Below the pieces are notes generated by a model. The model was not told where the DNA came from, ran no database searches, and saw nothing but the letters and a program-made list of their open reading frames with translations. A stretch of DNA of 63,554 bases, filler included, from Choristocarpus tenellus KU-1152 (taxonomy: Eukaryota > Protista > Phaeophyceae), in assembly GCA_964200185.2 (NCBI GenBank). It is 9 parts of 9 records of this genome, joined end to end, with 100 filler letters (N's around TTAATTAATTAA, not from the genome) between each part and the next. Parts side by side here need not be neighbours in the genome. Positions count along the whole stretch, not along the records: positions 1 to 10,608 come from CAXNAD020002837.1; 8 more parts are not named here. One strand, 5' to 3'. The first letter of the stretch is position 1, and each line of letters opens with the position of its first letter. The position numbers and the translations under genes are program-made. Positions 1 through 10,608 of this stretch are shown here, in pieces.

Positions 1-76
1 GTCTCTTCATTCTTATATTATTTCTTCTACAGAATCTTCTTTTACACATGAATAAAAAGCATATTCTTAAGAGGGA
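1..76 (+). repeat. Dispersed repeat family A (partial, contig end)
   Basis: ttcttctacagaatcttctt..acacatgaataaaaa matches 10709-10870 (same strand) and 10468-10608 and ~23065-23260 (opposite strand). Confidence 0.7.
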
Positions 77-1108
77 GATTGCCTGTACGCTCTAATAATC
101 AAAGCAAATGAAGCATCACAAACGTCTTTCTCGCTCTTCCCCAATCAACGATCAGGAGGGCTGTCACGAACAAAATCACTTTGAAGTTCTTGTGCCTTGT
201 CAACCAATCAATCAATACATATTTTACTTGTATAGAAAAGCACTCCCCACTTCAATCTACCTGGTCTCATGCCATCCTTTACTGTACAAAGACTAGCTCC
301 AACTTGCCTGTGCTCTACAAAACCGACCAAACCTATTGCATGTTTGGCACGTGAGTATTGAATCTTCCAAAAAACCCATAGAAAAGGTTGCGTCTATTGA
401 ATTCTCCTAATGGATTGCCACCTTCCAATTGTATGGAGAAAAAAGTCCTCTCAAGCTTTATAGACACAGGTTGCCACTTAGGCGCCACCCAACATGCAGT
501 GTCACATCCCATGTCCCGCCTGAATATCTGCAACATCCACCCTTCCCTTACATGCATGTTCTCAATTTGACATGCAAAGCAAGTTTACTTTGGAAAATGG
601 GCATATACAGATTTGCCTCTCAAAAGTGTAGACCACGGAAAAAAACATACCCATTGAAAGTTCTAGACTGCCTCCATGTAGCCACATACATGCTACAAAA
701 ACGACGACACATCCTATCCAACACTTGCCCCTCCATCTCCTCCCACAAGTGCTCTCCAGCCTGACTCGCGCCTGCATAATCACCTCCCCATTTCACACAC
801 ACCATCAGTCCTATACTCATAATCTCTTTGTCCCTGTAGTGTTCCTCACTCCAGAACACACACATGAAGCAAAAAAAAAAATATTACACCCTCGGTCAAA
901 TTCCAACTCCACAATAGTATCTAAAATGAGTTTAACTCACACTCACACATACACAGAGGTGTAGACCTCTGATTCTTTATTTTTTTATCACGACACCGGT
1001 CACAAAACTCCCTGCTCACGAGCGTGTGTGCACAAAACACACACTCGCAAACACTCACACCCATCCAGGCACGCACACACACACACACACACACATACAC
1101 AGGCTCAC

Positions 1109-1889
1109 CTTTTGGGAGGTGTCAGGTAGAAAGGTTGAACTGCCCTGACCCCACCTACTTCCCTCAAGGAAGAGTGGTAGTACTCCTGCATCGTTAAACA
1201 TTGATCGTTTGGGACAGGCCAAGAGCTGGGAGGATTTGGAAAATATTGGGGGTGAGTTTAGGGCAGGACAGACTCAAGAACGGTCTTCCAGAATATGCTA
1301 ATCCATTTGAGATCTCCTCCATGTTCAGTAGAAGTTAACTGAAAGTTGACCTCCAAGTACCACATGCCGCTGGCGTAAGTGCAAATCCTGTTCCCTCCTA
1401 TCTAGGGTTGGTGATAGCATTAGGGTACAGATCTCATTTTGGAGTGGATGGTGCGACTGTTTGGACTACTAAAAAGTGCGCACCTACCTTCCCGCTGTAG
1501 GACTACGAACTGCTGTGCCATTAACAGTACAAAATACGGCACTAACCGTCTTGCTGCTGTGGAGGGCAATCGCAATTTGTGCTTCATGTCTGGGGATCAA
1601 AAGAACAAGGTGGGGGTTATAGAACCCGTGAATCACTAACTGAAATGTCCGTATGAGTATACCTTAAGATAGATGTAATTAGGCACAAGCAGAAACCAGG
1701 GCTTGCCATTTCCAACACAAAACCGTAGTAACCTGGGGATGTGGTCCCCACTGTAGGGGGGATTGGTCAACACAACATCGTGGTCTGGAACACGACCCTC
1801 CTCCAACACCTGCTGGGGATACACAACAGTATGGGATGGAGAAATGCAACATGGTAAGAGGATTCAGGCAGGGAAATCAGAGAGGGGAA

Positions 1890-1946
<57 letters not shown>

Positions 1947-4900
1947 TGTCAAGTGGTAAGTGGGCACTGACCAGCTCCTTGGGGCCTCAGTGCACATCAT
2001 TTCTTGACATAGATGTTCAAGCAACCACTATTTCCACAACATAATGCCAAATTGGTTTATGTGGAGTCCTTTTCCACCTCAAATAATGGGTGAAGAAAGT
2101 GCATACAATAAAGTAAGCATGCGCACCCATGCCTGGGACACTAGCCAGTCCCACTAGCTTATGAAGGGCGAGAGGAACATTGTCACTCCTCAATACCTTA
2201 ATTTCGGTACAAGACTGTGCCCAACTAACCCCCTTCATGACGACTTTGAGGGCACCCACAGGCGTCACGAGATGCAGGCTTGAGGTACAAGAGTGGTTTG
2301 GAATGGAGTCACAATCGTGGGATATGTTGATGCCCATCTTCCTCTAGACCAAGGGTTAGGCTATCGATCTCGCTGTGGAACTAACTGATGGAAATACTGT
2401 TGCTTGTAATGCTATGTTATCATATAAAAAATCTTGGTAATAATTGGAATAAAGTACAAAAATCACTGTTCCTCATATGCCACAAATAGGCTACAGAGTT
2501 GAGATGCTTTCACTTTTTCAAAGGTAGAAGATCACTACTCCCTGCCAATAATAGGAACCTGGAGCTGATCTATACAGGGTTTTTCAACACACTCCAAAAT
2601 CTCTTGGTAGGTCATGTTCACTCCATGCCAAAAAAGGGTCCTACTATCTGCCTCCGGAAAAGAATGTAACACAGCATAGGATCACTACAAAGTAGAGCAT
2701 ACTTCCACAAATGAAGTTGCGGTTCAGAACAATGGCCTCGCCCTACTTCAAAAGGGTTGCAGCATTGAAAAAAAGTAAGAATTGCCTACTAAAGAGTTAC
2801 CATTTACAGTCCTCGATTCTGGCATTCTTCAAGGGAAGATCTCAACCCTACACCCAGCATTGCCACATCCACATAGTGTATGGAGTTGGCTTCAAAGGTC
2901 ACACTTCAATGAGGACACAATCGAATATGTTATCTATCCTTGGTGTACAGCAGCAATCAGGTTGGGCCACAGTTTCACAGCTTATTCCAGGATAGGGCCA
3001 TACGAACAAGAAGACGGCGGGAGAGGTAGCTTGCACACTTCCAGAATACAACTGTTCTTAACACCCTCCTCAATTCACTCATATTTCTCCACGCAACACA
3101 TCATAGTGATCCATCCTCCTTCACCCCTTCCATGAGATCTATGCTAACACACCTAACACTACGTGCTTTGTAGTTCATAGGATCTACCTATCATCCCCTA
3201 GTAGTACTCCCAACTTGGTGAGGACGCAACAACCATTTGCCGTATGCTATATCCATGACAGCGGACACAAGACTATTGATCTCATCTATCTGCTACAGAT
3301 GCTAAGGAGAAAGCATTTATGGGAAAAAGTGGGGGGGAGGTTGGGGGAGGGGCATGCCTTGTAGAAATCTTCCTTCCGATTGATCACTTGATGGAAACCC
3401 AACGCTGAGAGTCGGCCCACCACAGAGCCTTGACAGTAGTATGGGTCGTAGATCACTAGGTCCTTGGGTAACTTACCAAGGGATGCGGCAAGCCCTTTGA
3501 GTATGGGTGCAACATCAGCATACGCCCGTTCACTGGTTTCACAGTGATCAACATCCTATTAAACAAGTCAGTGGGGGGATAGGGTAGGGTTGAATAGGAA
3601 AACACCAATGATGGAGATGGGGCAGAGAGGTATTGACAATTCAAAGGAAGAGGAGTGACCTGATAGTGTGGGTGACTCGAGAATAGAATAGATGAATTGA
3701 GGTATGTTGCTGTGCCTTGTGCTTTATTGTAAGATACAACACCTTGTCTATTGAACACCCCAGTATTGCAGTATCATTTTCAAGCGCGAGGGATAGAGAA
3801 AGAGACATGGATATTTTTGAGTTAAGTTACGTCATGTGATCGAAATATCAAAAGGTCATTCATGTCAACAGCTGGAACTCTGCGTACCTCCACCTCAAAG
3901 GGGTACTCCACCACCTCAGGTACTGTGGACACTTCCTCTGATCTCCCCTGACCATTACATTCTCCCTTGTTCCCACCCAAACAACCCTCCTTGACACCAG
4001 TGGTGCCAGTGCTGCCCGTGCTCTTGTCTCCCTCCTTCGTCGTGTCCCTTCCGCTCTCCGAGGAAACATCCACTACCCCTGGCTTCTTATCCTTCTTATT
4101 TTTCTTCCTACTTTTCTTTTTCTTGCTTCTTTTCGTCACCAGTGGCACCTCTTTCCCCCGCCCCTTCAATGAGTCTTCCAAGTCTGACAAGCATCGCACC
4201 CTTCCATCGTGTAGATTGCTGTCACACGGTCTTGTCACCCCGTCCGAAGCGAAGGGCTCCTGATGCATTACCACACCTCCTTCCTCGAATATACCAACTT
4301 GGACCAGGTCTCCCTTGTCATCCCGAACGCCGGAGAACACTCGTCGGCGCGAGTCCACCAGTAGCATTTCCCCCTTGTGCATCACTCCTTCCATTGGACC
4401 TTGCTGTTCATGACCGTCTAAAGCTTCGCTAATATCGGTTTCATGGCTGTTATTGCCCTTATTGGAGTCTCTCTGGTGCAAATATTCCCCTGCCTTAGCG
4501 GTGCACTTCTTCCTTTGCCCTGAATCCGGCCCAGTTCTATCATCTGATCCGTTGACTCCAGGAAGAATGTCTGCAGTTGCGACTTGCTTCCCTCGCTCCA
4601 TATTTGAGCTCTCCTGGAACTCCGGATTCCTGCTCACACAAACCTCAACATCTGACACCGCCTTCGTATCATTTCTGGCCCGTTTCTTAATCTTCTTCCT
4701 GCGGGGTGCTGTAAGTTGTCCACATGCCACTTCCTCGTTGACAACGACATACTCCAGTCTGTCCCCCGTCGTGGGCTCCTTGCAATGTTTGCTTATCTTC
4801 TTGACACCTTTATTGCACCATTTGATATCTTTCCCCCCCTCCAAAATGGTGTTATTGTCCCCAGTAATCCTACAACCCCCCCCCTTTCCGAGTTCATCTG

Positions 4901-5057
4901 TACCCAGTTGTTGAGACTTGCGCTTCTTGCATCTGTTAACCTTGTTTGGTAGCTCTATTGGTGCATTCAACACCTCCAAGCCGGGGGGTTTCTTACCGTC
5001 CTGACTAGAATGGTCTTTCCCTTCACTCCTTGCTCTCTTCCGCCCCATGCCATTCAC
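1109..5057 (-). CDS. Putative SAM-dependent amino (N6-adenine-type) methyltransferase with long Lys-rich low-complexity N-terminus; 3' end not resolved
   Basis: Exons 5057-3888, 3555-3358, 1809-1663 and 1185-1109 splice in frame: ...YPFEVE|DVDHCETSERAYADVAPIL...DLVIYDPYYCQGSVVGRLSALGFHQVINRKEDFYK|VLEEGRVPDHDVVLTNPPYSGDHIPRLLRFC...KPWFLLVPNYIYLK|EYYHSSL...QPFYLTPPK. Contains motif I-like DPYYCxG and motif IV NPPY. Intron 2 uses a GC donor. Confidence 0.75.
1891..1949 (+). repeat. (TG)n microsatellite
   Basis: Long TG run inside an intron; similar CA/TG runs at ~1075, ~8330 and ~27800. Confidence 0.95.
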
Positions 5058-5269
5058 TTTGGACGTGGTACTGGGGTTTGAGATGGAGGTATGACCTGAA
5101 TCTAAAGGTAAACTTGTACAATAATGCCTACCCCTCCGACTTCGCTGAATTGTCTTGGCGTGACGTCAGATGTTACATACATAGGGTATTTATTCATAAT
5201 CAACTCGTACAACAAACCCTACCCGACTCAGGCAGCGCACATTGAAGGCGGTGTTCCAGAACAGATAGA
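5058..5269. promoter_or_regulatory. Short divergent (bidirectional) promoter region containing a TGACGTCA palindrome
   Basis: 212 bp between two head-to-head start codons; perfect CRE/bZIP-type palindrome at 5161-5168. Confidence 0.4.
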
Positions 5270-7786
5270 ATGAGGATCTTGCTCGCACTGATAGTGGCAG
5301 CCCTGGTCGGGTTAGCCACACCGTTGTCGTTGGGGAGAACGGGAATAGTGCATGATAGTCGCAAAATTTCGCGTCACACAAGCAGGTACTCTCACTACTC
5401 TGGGGTACTTAGCTTGATTATGATGAACAATGCTGTGAACCTCTGTCGTGTTCCTACTAGAGAATTCGATGCAGGTAAGATTAATGCTCTGATTTCTTCG
5501 TCGTTGACATCATGTCCACGCCGTCTTTTGTGGTGTGGCTAAACGCAGGCGAGAGCTGTTGGGGAGATCGACCTGACCACCTATCATTGTGCTGCCGCCC
5601 TGTTCGCAGCAGAGCTACGCCAACGATGATGTTTGGAAATTGGAAACGGGAGGAGAAGATTCCATTGCCTAGTGGCAGTACGTCAATCAAGGTCGCGCCT
5701 CTCAATGCGAAGAAGAGTCGGGTGAGACCCGTAGAGAGGTACATGGTGTTACGATGACGTTGGACCATTGCAAGTTGAAGTAGGCAAAGGGACTATAGTT
5801 GATACTACATTGGAAGTAAGGCGTTCCCTTTCGCAAGTAGCATATTCATTGTCATGTTCGAGAGCCAATCGCCATGCTTTCGAGACAGGGCTACGGGTTG
5901 GGAGACGATTCGACTTGGAAAGGGTGAAGATGTTAGTCCTGTGCAGGTGAAGGAGGTTTGAAGGTCTCGACGAGCAATCGGTCTGAATGGAACCCCAAAA
6001 TGGATACAAGTTAAAAAACTGATTGGACTAAGCAAAATATAATTTCAATCCCTCCATCTTGTGCTTTGCATGTAGTCAATTCCTCTGTTTGAGGTCAGGT
6101 CACACGCCTGTCGTACAAGCACGCAGAGGATGCGAATATTTTATCGTTGTTCCCTAGGTTGCCCCTTCCTGTTGCATAGATATTTTGTGTCACTTTACAT
6201 GTATAATTTCCTTCTCTCAACCCCTGGCACTCCGATTTACCAGAGGGGCTCAAGGGATGATGATGAGTGGGAAGAGAAGGTTATCGTCCCCGCATCCACC
6301 TACTTCGACTCCAAGGGCACTGACCCTGTGGTGGCAGTGATTGGTGAGTACCCCTGTACATTAGAGACTTCTGCTAGGAGCAGGTGGAGGTGGAGGTGTG
6401 AGAAAAAGCAGGCAAAGGTTAATAAGGAGATGATAAAAAGAGACGGATACTTTAAGGTGTTGTATACTGTGTGCATTTTAGAGAGGAGAAAGCAGGTCAG
6501 TGGTTAGCGACTTTGCTAAGAATATTAGGGCCGTTAACTGGATACTGTCGATAAATAGTTCTGGATTGGATTCCTCCCCTCCTCGTGGTATATTTTTCTT
6601 GTGTAGAACATGCGATTGTAATAGCCAGCCCTTATCATCAGCTTACTCTCTCCTGTTTTGCTATGGCATTAGCATGGGAAATTGTGATTCGTTATAAGTT
6701 CTTGAGTCCTTACATCTATGCTATTTCCGAGGTCAAATCTGATCCCAAACATCCAACCCTATGAAGCCACTATCTCACATGACAACGCAGATACTACGTG
6801 GAGGTGAGTTCCTTAGCCAATAGAACTCAACATCCGTATCTCATTCGAAACCAAAACATTTATCCTTCAACTTCAACCTTCGCCCCCTCCACCCTGCTGT
6901 ATTGATGGGTTACGTGTTGTCTGGTTTTGTGACCCCTTAGAGATGACGTACCCACGTTGATGTGGACCAAAATCCCTAGTTTTGATCTTCGTTTCAATCA
7001 GATCAAAGTCAATCTACTGGAGTGCAGTACTTTAGAAGCATTCTCTTTTGTTGATTGGAAGACAAGCGTCACTATTCTGAGTGATGTGAGCTCCCATGTA
7101 AAAGGACTAACACTGACCGATCTAATGTGTTGTGCAAGGGTGTGCTGTGGTTCCATGTGATGATCCTATGTGGGACTACTGCAGGAGGCACAGGAGATGC
7201 CACTGCTGTGCTCTTTTTCTGTGTTCTCCCTGATAGTGATGACATGTGATACTTGATTCGACACATAGTCAACAAGCCCCTTGTTGTTGTGTGCATGGGC
7301 ATGAATGAACTCGAGAAGCTCCAGTGCAAAAGTCCCACACCTTCACCCCGTACAAACCTGTGTCAGCTTAGTGTGTGTTCATAAAAATCGGTTTCTTGGC
7401 TCTTCTTTCATTTTGCGGTTCACAGCAAGAACAATATTTTCTTTCCAAGGGCAAAGGTGAGAGCCCCCAGCCCCCCGACGAGAGAGGACTTCACATCTCC
7501 TGCCACACACCACTACCCCACTCAAACCCACTGCCCTCCAATCTGCCCCTATTCCCACTCTCCTGCCTTGGATCTCACCCTGTTTGCATACACCCTCTCG
7601 TTCTTCCACTTGTACTGCAATGCAGTTACATGTTTGGTTTTCGTTCCCTTGGGCATCCTGGCCGTATGGTTCACAGCTCCTGTACCAGATGGAACGCCAG
7701 CCCCGGACCAGACCTACGAAGAGATGGTTGGGTCATCATCTTCGTCGAAATCATCTTCAGGAGTCAAACAATCAAGGCAATTCTAA
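5270..7786 (+). CDS. Small signal-peptide protein with one C-terminal TM helix (possibly plastid-targeted), function unknown
   Basis: Exons 5270-5385, 5461-5474 (14 nt), 5549-5721, 6244-6343 and 7626-7786, all GT-AG with matching phases. Hydrophobic N-terminus MRILLALIVAALVGLA, then an R/S-rich segment; TM segment VVAVIVTCLVFVPLGILAVWF. Confidence 0.65.
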
Positions 7787-10467
7787 GCACTCGTTGCTTC
7801 TTTTGATGCAGGGCCTGCTTTCACTTAGTTTCCTACCTTCCTCCACCAAAGACTACCTGTATCAGGTTGTGCGAGCATGTCATGGAATCACCCGTCTGTG
7901 GTGTACTTCATTTCACGGTGTCGCTGATGCAGGAAACTTGAACAAAATAATTCTTCATGGCTCCATTTTACTGTGGTACCTTGCATGGTCCATATTCTTA
8001 GAATTTGCAACGCATTAGTAGCAATCACTATACTCAAGAGGCGCCCCATCCCATGGTGAACACAAGAACATTGTCGTTTGCCTGTGTGCGTCAAGTTGCT
8101 GTTCACCATTCTTGACCCACATAAGTTGATGATTCTAGAGGTTCTGGGTCTGGGGGGAGTTATGGTGTCCCAGGCCCTGCAAAGGGGAAGGGGATACTTC
8201 TGTTGCTTTGTTGTCTAGGTAGTGCATGGGGAATGGAGAGGGACAGCGCAAGAAAAGGCTACAGTGTATTACACACATGCCAAGCCTACCCTTGAAATAT
8301 TCCAGCTTGTTTTGCCACAATGAGATGGTGTGTATGTGTGTGTGTGTGTGTAGGGACTTTTGCTTCACGGGTCCCAGCTACTGAAGAAGGGATTGTCGCA
8401 GCAGCTGGAGGAGTGCTAACATGCTTGTCCATCAGTTTGTCTTTTTTTTGGTACGTTTCAAGATCAATGTATATTCGTTGGAAGTACCTTACTGTTTCAT
8501 ATATATTTCTTCTCTTTACGCTGCTTTAGTGTGAAGAGCTGCTTGTCCTTGTAGCAATAGTTCTCCATTACATCTTCCCACATACCAAGTATGGAATAGT
8601 TAGGAGGGATTGTGGCTGACACACTGATATCCTACAATAGTTGCCGATAAATCATGTCCTTTCTATAGCATCATCAATCTCCTATCAGTAACTGGACGTA
8701 AAACACCACTTTTATCATGACCCGTGCTGGACCCCAAATGCGTCTCACGTCATTCCATGTGGTGAACTCTCTTTGGATAGATATGACTGCCCCATTTATT
8801 TCTACATACATACGATAGATACATACGTAACATTTTTTAAGTTTTTTGCAGTCATACACAAAAGATAATGTGGCAGAATATTTGGAGTTTGGGTTGATCC
8901 TACTACAGCAACATGAACCGAATGTATGTATTGGATCATGTGTATAAAATATACAACCAACTGTGTAAAAATGTGTGCACTCGCTAAAATAATATCCTCC
9001 TACAGGATGAATCAGAGTGGAGGGTGGTCGCCATCGGGTTCCTCGTTAAGTGTAGGCCGTTTTGGACACGTAAATGCCACCAATCCCGACAAGCACAAGG
9101 CAAGTCTCGGTGAAAACGGAGAGACCTTTCGTATGGTACTTGATCCAATCTGATAGGCGAACACAACTTGGTACAATATACTGACGACATAGCCGTCAAT
9201 ATGAATTCATCCGTACATAATCTAGATCACTTTTTTTATTACTGAGCGTCCGACACCGGTCACGTTTGGTAACACCTCAAAAAAAACACGCTCTTGAAGT
9301 TTTTTGCGAGCATGACAATCTGTCACGCTTGCTACAATGATATTCCTTTAAACTACCTGGAAAATTAGCTTCCGAAACTGATCATGACACCTGGTCACTA
9401 ATGTGTTCTGGATGGTGTTAAAATTTGAACAACAACAAAAAGCTGGATCACACGTGTTGTTGCAAATGCACGATACATTGCAGATCTAGGAAAAGAGTTG
9501 TGAAGGGTGGATATATATGTAGAATGTCTCTTTACTCCCAGCCAGCTGAACTATGGAACAACAGAAACGTAGTAGACAAATAGGAGCTATGTAAACGTAA
9601 GCATGAAAGGTCTGCAGGGTACCACAGTGTTAAGGCATACATAGCCCACCCAACAGGGCATCAAATCTATAATATTCACTCACAAAGCACTTGGTTGGGG
9701 TGGTTGGGTTAGGCACTAAATGGGGGTTGCTCGCACTTTTTGGAAATTACTTGGGACAACCCTGTTCAAAGTTACCGCACCAGTCCTATCAGTGCACTGG
9801 CACATGCAGCAGCAACAAAGAGGGCTCCTGTTGAGTTTGATGAGGCGATAAGGCTGTGGTTGACGGATTGGGATCACCTTATTAAGGATCAAACACAGCC
9901 TTACGAATCACATGGAATCTGATTTCCACTACATCGCTACCCCTATTTTTGAATGGTGCTGTGTTTAGCAGGTTGAGGTATTGAACTAGATTGTTCGAGG
10001 TCCTGGGAGATCCCCTTGTTTGGCACCAAGATAGGGGTGTAGTTGACAGGTTGCACTCTTCAAAGGTCGCCAAGGTCTAGTCTTTACGAGGATGTGACCA
10101 CCTCTCAGTCTGATTATCCCGTGCTCGCTTTAGCGAGTGTATACATCCGACCATTGCTTATCTATTGATTCAAAATAAACGAGAGGTACCCAGAGTTGCA
10201 TTTTAAGGATGCTGAAAAACGTATCCAAAATTCGGCTTTAAACCATAATCATGGTCTTTACGGGTCTCAAACGTTTCAATACAGAAACGTAAGAGCCGCT
10301 TCTTTATGCTACATATGGTTTAAATAAACCCTAAACATGATCTTTAGTGGTTTAGGGTTTATTTTAAACCCTGAGGTACGTTTACAGTTACTCCTATCGA
10401 ATCCGTAGTATGCGGTGTATGTATTTCTACAAACTGACTAATATTTTCGAAGAATACGTTTATGACT

Positions 10468-10608
10468 CTCTGTTAAGAATATGCTTTTTATTCATGTGTA
10501 AAAGAACATTCTGTAGAAGAAACAATTTAATAATGAAGAGACGGTATTTGTATTCTGAAGAATAACAAAAGGTTGGGTTTCAAGAACTAGAATATGTAAC
10601 AGTTCAGG
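10468..10608 (-). repeat. Dispersed repeat family A (contig end)
   Basis: Reverse-complement similarity to 1-76 and 10709-10870. Confidence 0.7.

Follow-up and report, generated by a model that had tools for sequence, protein, structure and literature searches.

The DNA analyzed here is a window of 63,554 nucleotides from the brown alga Choristocarpus tenellus KU-1152, composed of parts of nine records of a 164 Mb assembly in 27,310 contigs. The gene of interest lies on the minus strand of the first part, the 10,608 bp nuclear contig CAXNAD020002837.1 (positions 1-10,608, hereafter C2837). Our analysis revealed that it is a further member, namely a long form of the B clade, of a catalogued but uncharacterized methyltransferase family that is found in several algal and protist lineages. 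More specifically, and with a probability that we place at roughly 0.6, it is a seven-exon gene encoding an amino-methyltransferase of about 627 amino acids that fits the Group-2 clade 3 of Iyer, Zhang and Aravind (2015; PMC4738411) and acts on adenine N6 in nuclear or nucleolar RNA.

Four in-frame exons were identified on C2837, at positions 5048-3888, 3555-3358, 1809-1663 and 1185-1109. Exon 1 (3888-5048, 387 codons from the ATG at 5048) encodes a basic and mostly disordered N-terminal arm and ends at the donor GAG|GTACGC (GT at 3887-3886). The exon closes at 3888, short of the end of the ORF, so that the junction reads FEVE|DVDHCET and keeps the spacing seen in its closest relative, P0086 (FEVKDDDHCET). 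Exon 2 (3358-3555, 66 codons) comprises DHCET (3549-3535) and the N-terminal helix, the S-adenosylmethionine (SAM) binding loop IYDPYYCQG of motif I (3453-3427) and EDFY, similar to motif III (3372-3361). It is followed by a non-canonical GC donor for intron 2 (AAG|GCATGC, 3356-3357); no other junction retains EDFY while joining the NPPY exon in frame at the spacing of the family. The acceptor of exon 3 (1663-1812, 49-50 codons) is of the NAGNAG type and could be used at either 1812 or 1809, the latter being preferred on family spacing. This exon contains strand 4, the catalytic DVVLTNPPYS (NPPY codons at 1764-1753), DHIPR and KPWFLLVPNYIYLK, and its translation carries DVVLTNPPYSGDH and KPWFLLVPNY. 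Exon 4 (1109-1185, 77 nt) terminates in QPFYLTPPK, ends in phase 2 and has the donor AAG|GTGAGC. An earlier note, made from the sequence alone, had proposed a spliced eukaryotic gene with four in-frame exons between 1109 and 5057, and in this it was accurate: exon 4 ends exactly at 1109, all of the motifs it quoted (DHCET, IYDPYYCQG, EDFY, DVVLTNPPYS and KPWFLLVPNY) are present on the minus strand, and the basic disordered stretch of about 390 residues that it described corresponds to the 387 codons of exon 1. The AG acceptors, the GT or GC donors and the exon-by-exon matches to the family agree with a spliced gene of an alga.

The gene is incomplete on C2837, since exon 4 stops in phase 2 and exons 5 to 7 lie on a second contig, C11952, which was found by searching the genome with the tail of P0086. 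On that contig, exon 5 (237-354) is preceded by an acceptor and begins with exactly the one base that completes the dangling AG of exon 4. It reads YDYHSPRGS…KTSPFNTFWYIHLGS, in parallel with RYYYWTPEGH…KTAPFMSFWYLHLAE of P0086. Exon 6 occupies positions 609-686, with 618 as an alternative beginning, and exon 7 (973-1077), which is terminated by a stop codon, carries IPF.MMDSNDPRRKK…, in agreement with the B-clade tail (L/I)P….SNDP.RRK; motifs specific to this clade were thus found in both exons 5 and 7. The assembly contains exactly two loci of the family, namely C2837 (with C11952) and contig C1144, and because the latter is complete, the tail on C11952 belongs to the C2837 gene. Together the seven exons amount to 1,884 nt in frame (627 codons), with AG at all acceptors and GT at all donors except for the one GC.

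The exons were searched singly, with natural database proteins taking the place of the joined spliced protein. Against approximately 250 family proteins, the best E-values were 1e-23 for exon 2, 4e-23 for exon 3, 9e-6 for exon 4, 1e-5 for exon 5 and 9e-5 for exon 7, and no significant match was obtained for exon 6. Exons 2, 3 and 4 map end to end on residues 30-95, 95-144 and 146-167 of P0086. Identity is 56-60% to family members for exon 2, 60-69% to B-clade proteins for exon 3 and 65% to the respective residues of P0086 for exon 4. Judged by these sequence comparisons, the exon matches go far beyond chance.

A deposited protein for this locus, P0121 (476 aa), has the same start and the same exon 1 donor as our model. 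However, it reads through the GC-AG intron 2 up to a stop at 3286, so that its C-terminus after EDFYK consists of 23 intron-encoded residues (3286-3357, minus strand), and it lacks the catalytic NPPY exon and everything downstream. This truncation is an annotation error and not biology. The missed GC-AG intron and the contig break have shortened the public Choristocarpus model before its catalytic exon, and, because the public model is truncated, orthology-based censuses of brown-algal methyltransferases would miss or misjudge the gene.

Concerning the family as a whole, a word-based search with the natural 190-aa open reading frame (ORF) of the paralogue on C1144 returned 252 proteins from brown algae, Chrysoparadoxa, volvocine algae, diatoms and marine transcriptomes, all of them hypothetical or unnamed and none with a Pfam domain. 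An exhaustive profile search extended this to 2,761 cluster representatives at E≤1e-3, among them 977 at E≤1e-30. Green algae are represented by Gonium, Volvox, Edaphochlamys, Chlamydomonas incerta, Chlamydomonas schloesseri, Haematococcus and Tetraselmis; other named members come from Guillardia, Seminavis, Thalassiosira, Euglena, Diplonema and a colponemid-like protist. The family therefore reaches over brown and green algae, diatoms, cryptophytes and euglenozoans and is restricted to eukaryotes. It was not seen among the named animal, fungal and land-plant matches retrieved, which probably accounts for its neglect. Across 97 full-length members, T-N-P-P-x-S does not vary, and conservation is 90% or higher for D-P-x-x-C-x-G and D-F-Y. 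In short, the family is large, strongly conserved over several eukaryotic supergroups with all of its catalytic motifs retained, and uncharacterized.

No exon, paralogue or any of the 97 full-length members scored above threshold in Pfam or NCBIfam. Sub-threshold Pfam contacts, all located around NPPY, were made with Eco57I (PF07669; 23 of the 97 members, best E 0.0036), MTS (PF05175; 11 members, best E 0.016), N6_Mtase (PF02384; nine), PCIF1 (PF12237; seven, best E 1e-3, the cut-off being 31.1 bits) and EcoRI_methylase (PF13651; three), and among the same proteins there was no gathering-score match to phage Dam (PF05869), PF13651, PF02384 or PF07669. The MT-A70 profile (PF05063) matched none of the members, whose core is unpermuted and carries NPPY instead of DPPW. 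The sub-threshold MTS scores do not amount to METTL5 or HemK membership, and no WW domain accompanies the weak PCIF1 signal. The earlier note had not recognized the gene as MT-A70, METTL5, HemK or PCIF1, a view borne out by these profiles, none of which was matched above threshold. Searches of Pfam, NCBIfam and PDB sequences with the single exons and the 190-aa ORF gave either nothing or chance matches (antibody light chains and laccase among them), while a PDB profile search with the 97 members found only ribosomal L19e, on the basic tail.

The structure of the catalytic domain was modeled with AlphaFold2 (AF2) on P0086, which shares 57-65% identity with exons 2-4, using the alignment of 97 sequences. 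The model shows a core of alternating strands and helices, with a predicted local distance difference test score (pLDDT) of 83.7 and a predicted template modeling score (pTM) of 0.75. In Foldseek its top matches, with E-values from 1e-4 to 1e-2, were RlmJ (which forms m6A2030 in 23S rRNA), lmo1582, Trm14, HemK, HsdM, M.BseCI and METTL16, the first four of these lying near 1e-4. Exhaustive structural alignment (VIA) yielded a plateau at Z 9-11 from which no neighbor stood out, formed by lmo1582, DrdV, METTL5, PH1948, DIMT1, MmeI, LlaBIII, HsdM, M.BseCI, M.TaqI, CamA and RlmJ. All matches by either method were class I methyltransferases. The model has the topology of Group 2, with DH(C/F)ET followed by a helix at residues 38-54 and with motif I ahead of motif IV in the unpermuted order. 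From this model, the domain is predicted to belong with the class I Rossmann amino-methyltransferases of the M.EcoKI/M.TaqI kind, though none of the solved enzymes is close to it. A Rossmann methyltransferase fold, on which the earlier note had staked its reading, is therefore predicted for the closest relative of the gene.

The N-terminal arm encoded by exon 1 has a pI of 9.0, and 72% of its 387 residues are polar, Gly or Pro. It contains the lysine-rich run KKKKSRKKNKKDKK (4083-4124, minus strand), already remarked upon in the earlier note, which resembles a nuclear or nucleolar localization signal, and a second basic run, RRKKIKKR, at residue 116. A tandem repeat of two 18-nt units at 4099-4134, detected by TRF, is the footprint of the lysine-rich run in the DNA. 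The lysine runs may serve in localization. Furthermore, residues ~215-262 (4263-4406, minus strand) form a conserved beta island with a motif of the EMLLVD..RVFS..RD..GDLVQVG type. In an AF2 model of the arm, built from four sequences only, the island consists of five short strands at pLDDT 88-89, and the rest of the arm falls below 50. The arm of the Discosporangium orthologue P0122 also opens with MGRKRARSEG and carries the island as GVMH.GEMLLVD…RVFS…RD…G.LVQVG, and P0251 and P0239, relatives from the B clade, have weaker versions of it at their N-termini. No Pfam family matched these ~45 residues, and comparison with solved structures gave a best Z of 4.7, mostly to single propeller blades, with Foldseek E-values above 0.2. 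One might guess that the island is a targeting or partner-binding module.

The second Choristocarpus locus, at 4864-6218 on the plus strand of C1144, is an A-clade paralogue whose deposited protein is P0266 (369 aa). Its signatures are DHFETP, DHKxR and DHPEGTG, whereas the C2837 gene has DHCET, DHIPR, VYxK, PPxRY.Y and a divergent replacement of DHPEGTGH, which it has in common with P0086/P0251, P0230, P0239, P0242, P0248, P0235 and P0247. Both copies retain all catalytic motifs. Intron load differs between them, as the C1144 copy has a single intron, inside the DPYY|C motif, versus six in the C2837 gene. In a quick maximum-likelihood tree with midpoint rooting, in which the C2837 gene was represented by exon 2 alone and support was given only by the Shimodaira-Hasegawa-like approximate likelihood ratio test (SH-aLRT), the gene grouped with the proteins sharing its signatures and a Tetraselmis sequence in the B clade (SH-aLRT 99), and the brown-algal A clade was recovered at SH-aLRT 95. 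A third grouping, of the diatom type, includes a fragment from Ectocarpus fasciculatus and a KH fusion. On this tree the family comprises at least three old clades spread over several eukaryotic supergroups. The Ectocarpus fragment, P0211, is a partial third paralogue with NDHFETP and GEHKQKLL. No counterpart of it was detected in Choristocarpus, either because brown algae may differ in how many paralogues they have or because the assembly may be incomplete.

The earlier note had regarded the gene as the best candidate for an undescribed system. This does not hold, as the family fits a clade already catalogued in silico. In their survey, Iyer, Zhang and Aravind (2015) defined Group-2 clade 3 as predicted RNA N6-adenine methyltransferases of microbial eukaryotes with an N-terminal helix, often two paralogues per genome and, in some members, fusions to CCCH or KH domains, and suggested a dimer similar to METTL3/14 (PMC4738411). 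The family resembles this clade, whose type is CHLREDRAFT_205675, in its unpermuted Group-2 core, its N-terminal helix, the Asn in the strand-4 motif, its broad spread in microbial eukaryotes, the two paralogues of this genome (in separate, supported clades) and the CCCH and KH fusions of some members. There are also differences. The C2837 gene carries, in place of an RNA-binding domain, a basic arm of 387 aa that contains a small beta module, and at least three clades were found here as opposed to two. Bacterial cognates on conjugative elements or in R-M systems, a further trait of the clade, did not turn up in tblastn on plasmids and phages or in scans of IMG/VR and GTDB, the one link seen being the profile-level match to PHROG 799.

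Outside eukaryotes, the nearest profile, a distant relative, is that of a phage family. The PHROG 799 profile, annotated as "DNA methyltransferase", matched 94 of the 97 members (best E 3e-12), with homology from the N-terminal helix to past NPPY. Among non-cellular groups in the ESM Atlas, the nearest were phage proteins of 207 aa, some of them annotated N6_Mtase, and a Nucleocytoviricota family of 161 aa (TM 0.82 by target). The small giant-virus proteins, which resemble EcoRI methylases, have a compact core similar in shape to that of the family; however, no relative with pairwise similarity came to light when phage genomes and plasmids were searched by tblastn and IMG/VR and GTDB by pattern scans, and the eukaryotic family differs by its spliceosomal introns, DH[F/C]ET, PFY, DHPEGTGH or its B variant and a basic tail of the NPRQRK type. 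The suggestion of a virus-like core in the earlier note is consequently right as deep ancestry, phage and giant-virus proteins being the nearest non-cellular look-alikes, but there is no sign of a recent domestication: the eukaryotic clades are old, and these searches brought up no close relative among viruses, plasmids or prokaryotes.

Among characterized enzymes, the gamma-class group of HsdM and M.TaqI (lmo1582, M.TaqI, MmeI, DrdV) agrees with the family in its Rossmann fold, the order of motif I before motif IV, NPPY and the N-terminal helix, with Z 9.4-10.9 over 158-189 residues at an identity of only 12-18%. Unlike these enzymes, the family lacks both a target-recognition domain and a specificity subunit, and its N6_Mtase and Eco57I scores stay below cut-off. 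The rRNA m6A enzymes and their relatives (METTL5, RlmJ, ZCCHC4 and KsgA/DIMT1/Erm) come equally close, with Z 10.5 for METTL5, 10.4 for DIMT1 and 9.3 for RlmJ (Foldseek E 1e-4). They too are small, single-domain proteins with (D/N)PP(Y/F), and basic tails such as those of the family would suit ribosome-biogenesis factors; on the other hand, profile membership is lacking (MTS being sub-threshold), as is a known partner of the TRMT112 type. PCIF1/CAPAM, the cap m6Am writer of Group-2 clade 1, belongs to the same higher-order group (PMC4738411), yet it has NPPF where the family has NPPY, possesses a WW domain that the family does not have and is outside the top structural matches. The MT-A70 enzymes (METTL3, METTL14, METTL4 and AMT1) differ by their circularly permuted DPPW core, in contrast to the unpermuted NPPY core seen here. 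A genome scan for PCIF1 and MT-A70 gave no match, though the control of the scan was equally silent.

The encoded protein consists of the long basic arm, with its beta module and lysine runs similar to nuclear localization signals, followed by a predicted class I Rossmann SAM-dependent amino-methyltransferase domain of ~240 residues. The latter begins with a helix preceded by DHCET and continues with the SAM loop DPYYCxG, DFY and, at the end of strand 4, NPPY. By analogy with such enzymes, the exocyclic amine of a flipped base would be held through hydrogen bonds from the Asn and the Pro-Pro backbone, with the Tyr stacking on that base during methyl transfer from SAM. If the assignment to Group-2 clade 3 is right, the target would be adenine N6 in nuclear or nucleolar RNA, and the two catalytically intact paralogues may work together. 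The structure of the gene, its place in the family, the fold (on the closest relative) and the intact motifs are supported directly by our data, and we infer the RNA substrate, the adenine base, the nuclear localization and any A/B partnership. With regard to the substrate, P0316 has two KH_1 domains (E=2e-26), the B-clade protein P0242 ends in a CCCH finger (zf-CCCH_2, E=7e-4) and a 62-member chlorophyte cluster of the ESM Atlas with the fold of the family is 100% zf-CCCH; no recognizable extra domain was found in the ten longest family members. In addition, a 2026 study reported that brown algae as a whole lack DNA methyltransferases and that N6-methyladenine (6mA) and N4-methylcytosine (4mC) were at background in nanopore data of the species sister to them (PMC13076208). 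RNA is favored over DNA because of the KH and CCCH fusions, the match to Group-2 clade 3 and the reported lack of DNA methylation in brown algae.

Several points weigh against this assignment. The fold comes from a model of P0086, a stand-in for the protein of the C2837 gene itself, and the GC-AG intron, the NAGNAG choice and the link between exons 4 and 5 across contigs were placed purely by homology. Most members, the C2837 gene included, carry no RNA-binding domain. Furthermore, NPPY also occurs in DNA N6-adenine and N4-cytosine, RNA m2G and protein glutamine enzymes, and structural neighbors of all these kinds have similar Z; the nearest non-eukaryotic profile, PHROG 799, is annotated as a DNA methyltransferase. 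Finally, Chlamydomonas reinhardtii, the source of the type protein CHLREDRAFT_205675, was not returned by our searches, although C. incerta and C. schloesseri proteins are members.

The earlier note had suggested that the gene may be a domesticated nuclear 6mA/m6A writer with a core like that of phage or giant-virus DNA adenine methylases. The DNA version of this reading, a nuclear N6-adenine (or N4-cytosine) methyltransferase of DNA that descends from such a viral enzyme, appears to us unlikely. It draws on the NPPY motif, on the wide reach of PHROG 799 among the members, on M.TaqI, HsdM, MmeI, M.BseCI and CamA as structural neighbors at Z 9-10.6, on the giant-virus and phage clusters as the nearest non-cellular shapes and on the basic runs of the arm that resemble nuclear localization signals. 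However, the domains fused to relatives are RNA-binding (KH and CCCH) and not chromatin or DNA readers, neither tblastn nor pattern scans found a close viral, plasmid or prokaryotic homologue of what are several old eukaryotic clades, and the survey that catalogued the matching clade leaned to RNA (PMC4738411); the reported absence of DNA methyltransferases from brown algae and the background levels of 6mA and 4mC in their sister species also argue against it (PMC13076208). A slightly smaller chance is given to a different acceptor, either guanine N2 in tRNA or rRNA, as in Trm11, Trm14 and RsmC, or protein glutamine or lysine, as in HemK and Mtq2. Trm14, aTrm11, TrmN, HemK and Mtq2 score structurally like the adenine enzymes, (D/N)PP(Y/F) is common to adenine, guanine-N2 and protein amino-methyltransferases (PMC4738411, Box 1), and the sub-threshold Pfam contacts include MTS and UPF0020. 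Nevertheless, no member reaches those Pfam thresholds, the N-terminal helix and the degenerate strand-3 region fit Group-2 adenine methylases, and the top-ranking structural matches are mostly N6-adenine enzymes, points that are not decisive.

It could also be argued that the split over two contigs, the GC donor and the truncated annotation mark a decaying, non-functional paralogue. The deposited model indeed ends ahead of the catalytic exon, immediately past exon 4 there is a frame interrupted by two stops, and exon 6 has no significant match. We regard this as highly improbable, given that all seven exons are open in a frame of 627 codons with motifs I, III and IV intact, that residues specific to the B clade are retained through exons 2-7 and that Discosporangium has a conserved counterpart of the arm, beta island included; the stop-containing frame is intron, since the true exon 5 is on C11952.

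As regards the surroundings of the gene, the first part of intron 4 occupies positions 1-1108 (minus strand) and runs off the contig. Three-frame translation of this segment revealed no coding sequence resembling the family. It contains an (AC)n microsatellite at 1037-1101 and a decoy acceptor at 922-921, after which a candidate exon within the window (RYYCGVGI) stops after eight codons; this candidate was rejected, and with it the idea of a decayed tail, as the true exon 5 is on C11952. A second microsatellite lies in intron 2 (1891-1949). Both are (AC)n/(TG)n tracts of ~30 repeats, and the long HTHT/CVCV pseudo-ORFs in the ORF list arise from them. The stretch 5100-10608 holds ORFs of at most 144 aa, the longest of which gave no Pfam domain, and it matched no Rfam family; the upstream half of C2837 has no gene recognizable by ORF, Pfam and Rfam scans. 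On C1144, an ORF just upstream of the paralogue (3480-3746, minus strand) was seen by eye to end in a manner similar to acyl carrier proteins (…LDSLD.VE.VMA.E.EF…).

An extension of the RNA N6-adenine reading is that the A and B paralogues together form an RNA m6A writer of protists and algae, or one specific for adenines of caps or non-coding RNA, which would replace or supplement METTL3-METTL14 and employ the beta module and arm for targeting. We put this forward tentatively, as a speculation; if true, the A/B writer would be a second, independently recruited system of adenine methylation of mRNA or non-coding RNA in eukaryotes. With regard to the substrate itself, if it is DNA, adenine methylation would have to be considered anew in brown algae, which are regarded as being without DNA methylation, and if the substrate is RNA, the family would represent an unassigned writer in ecologically dominant algae.

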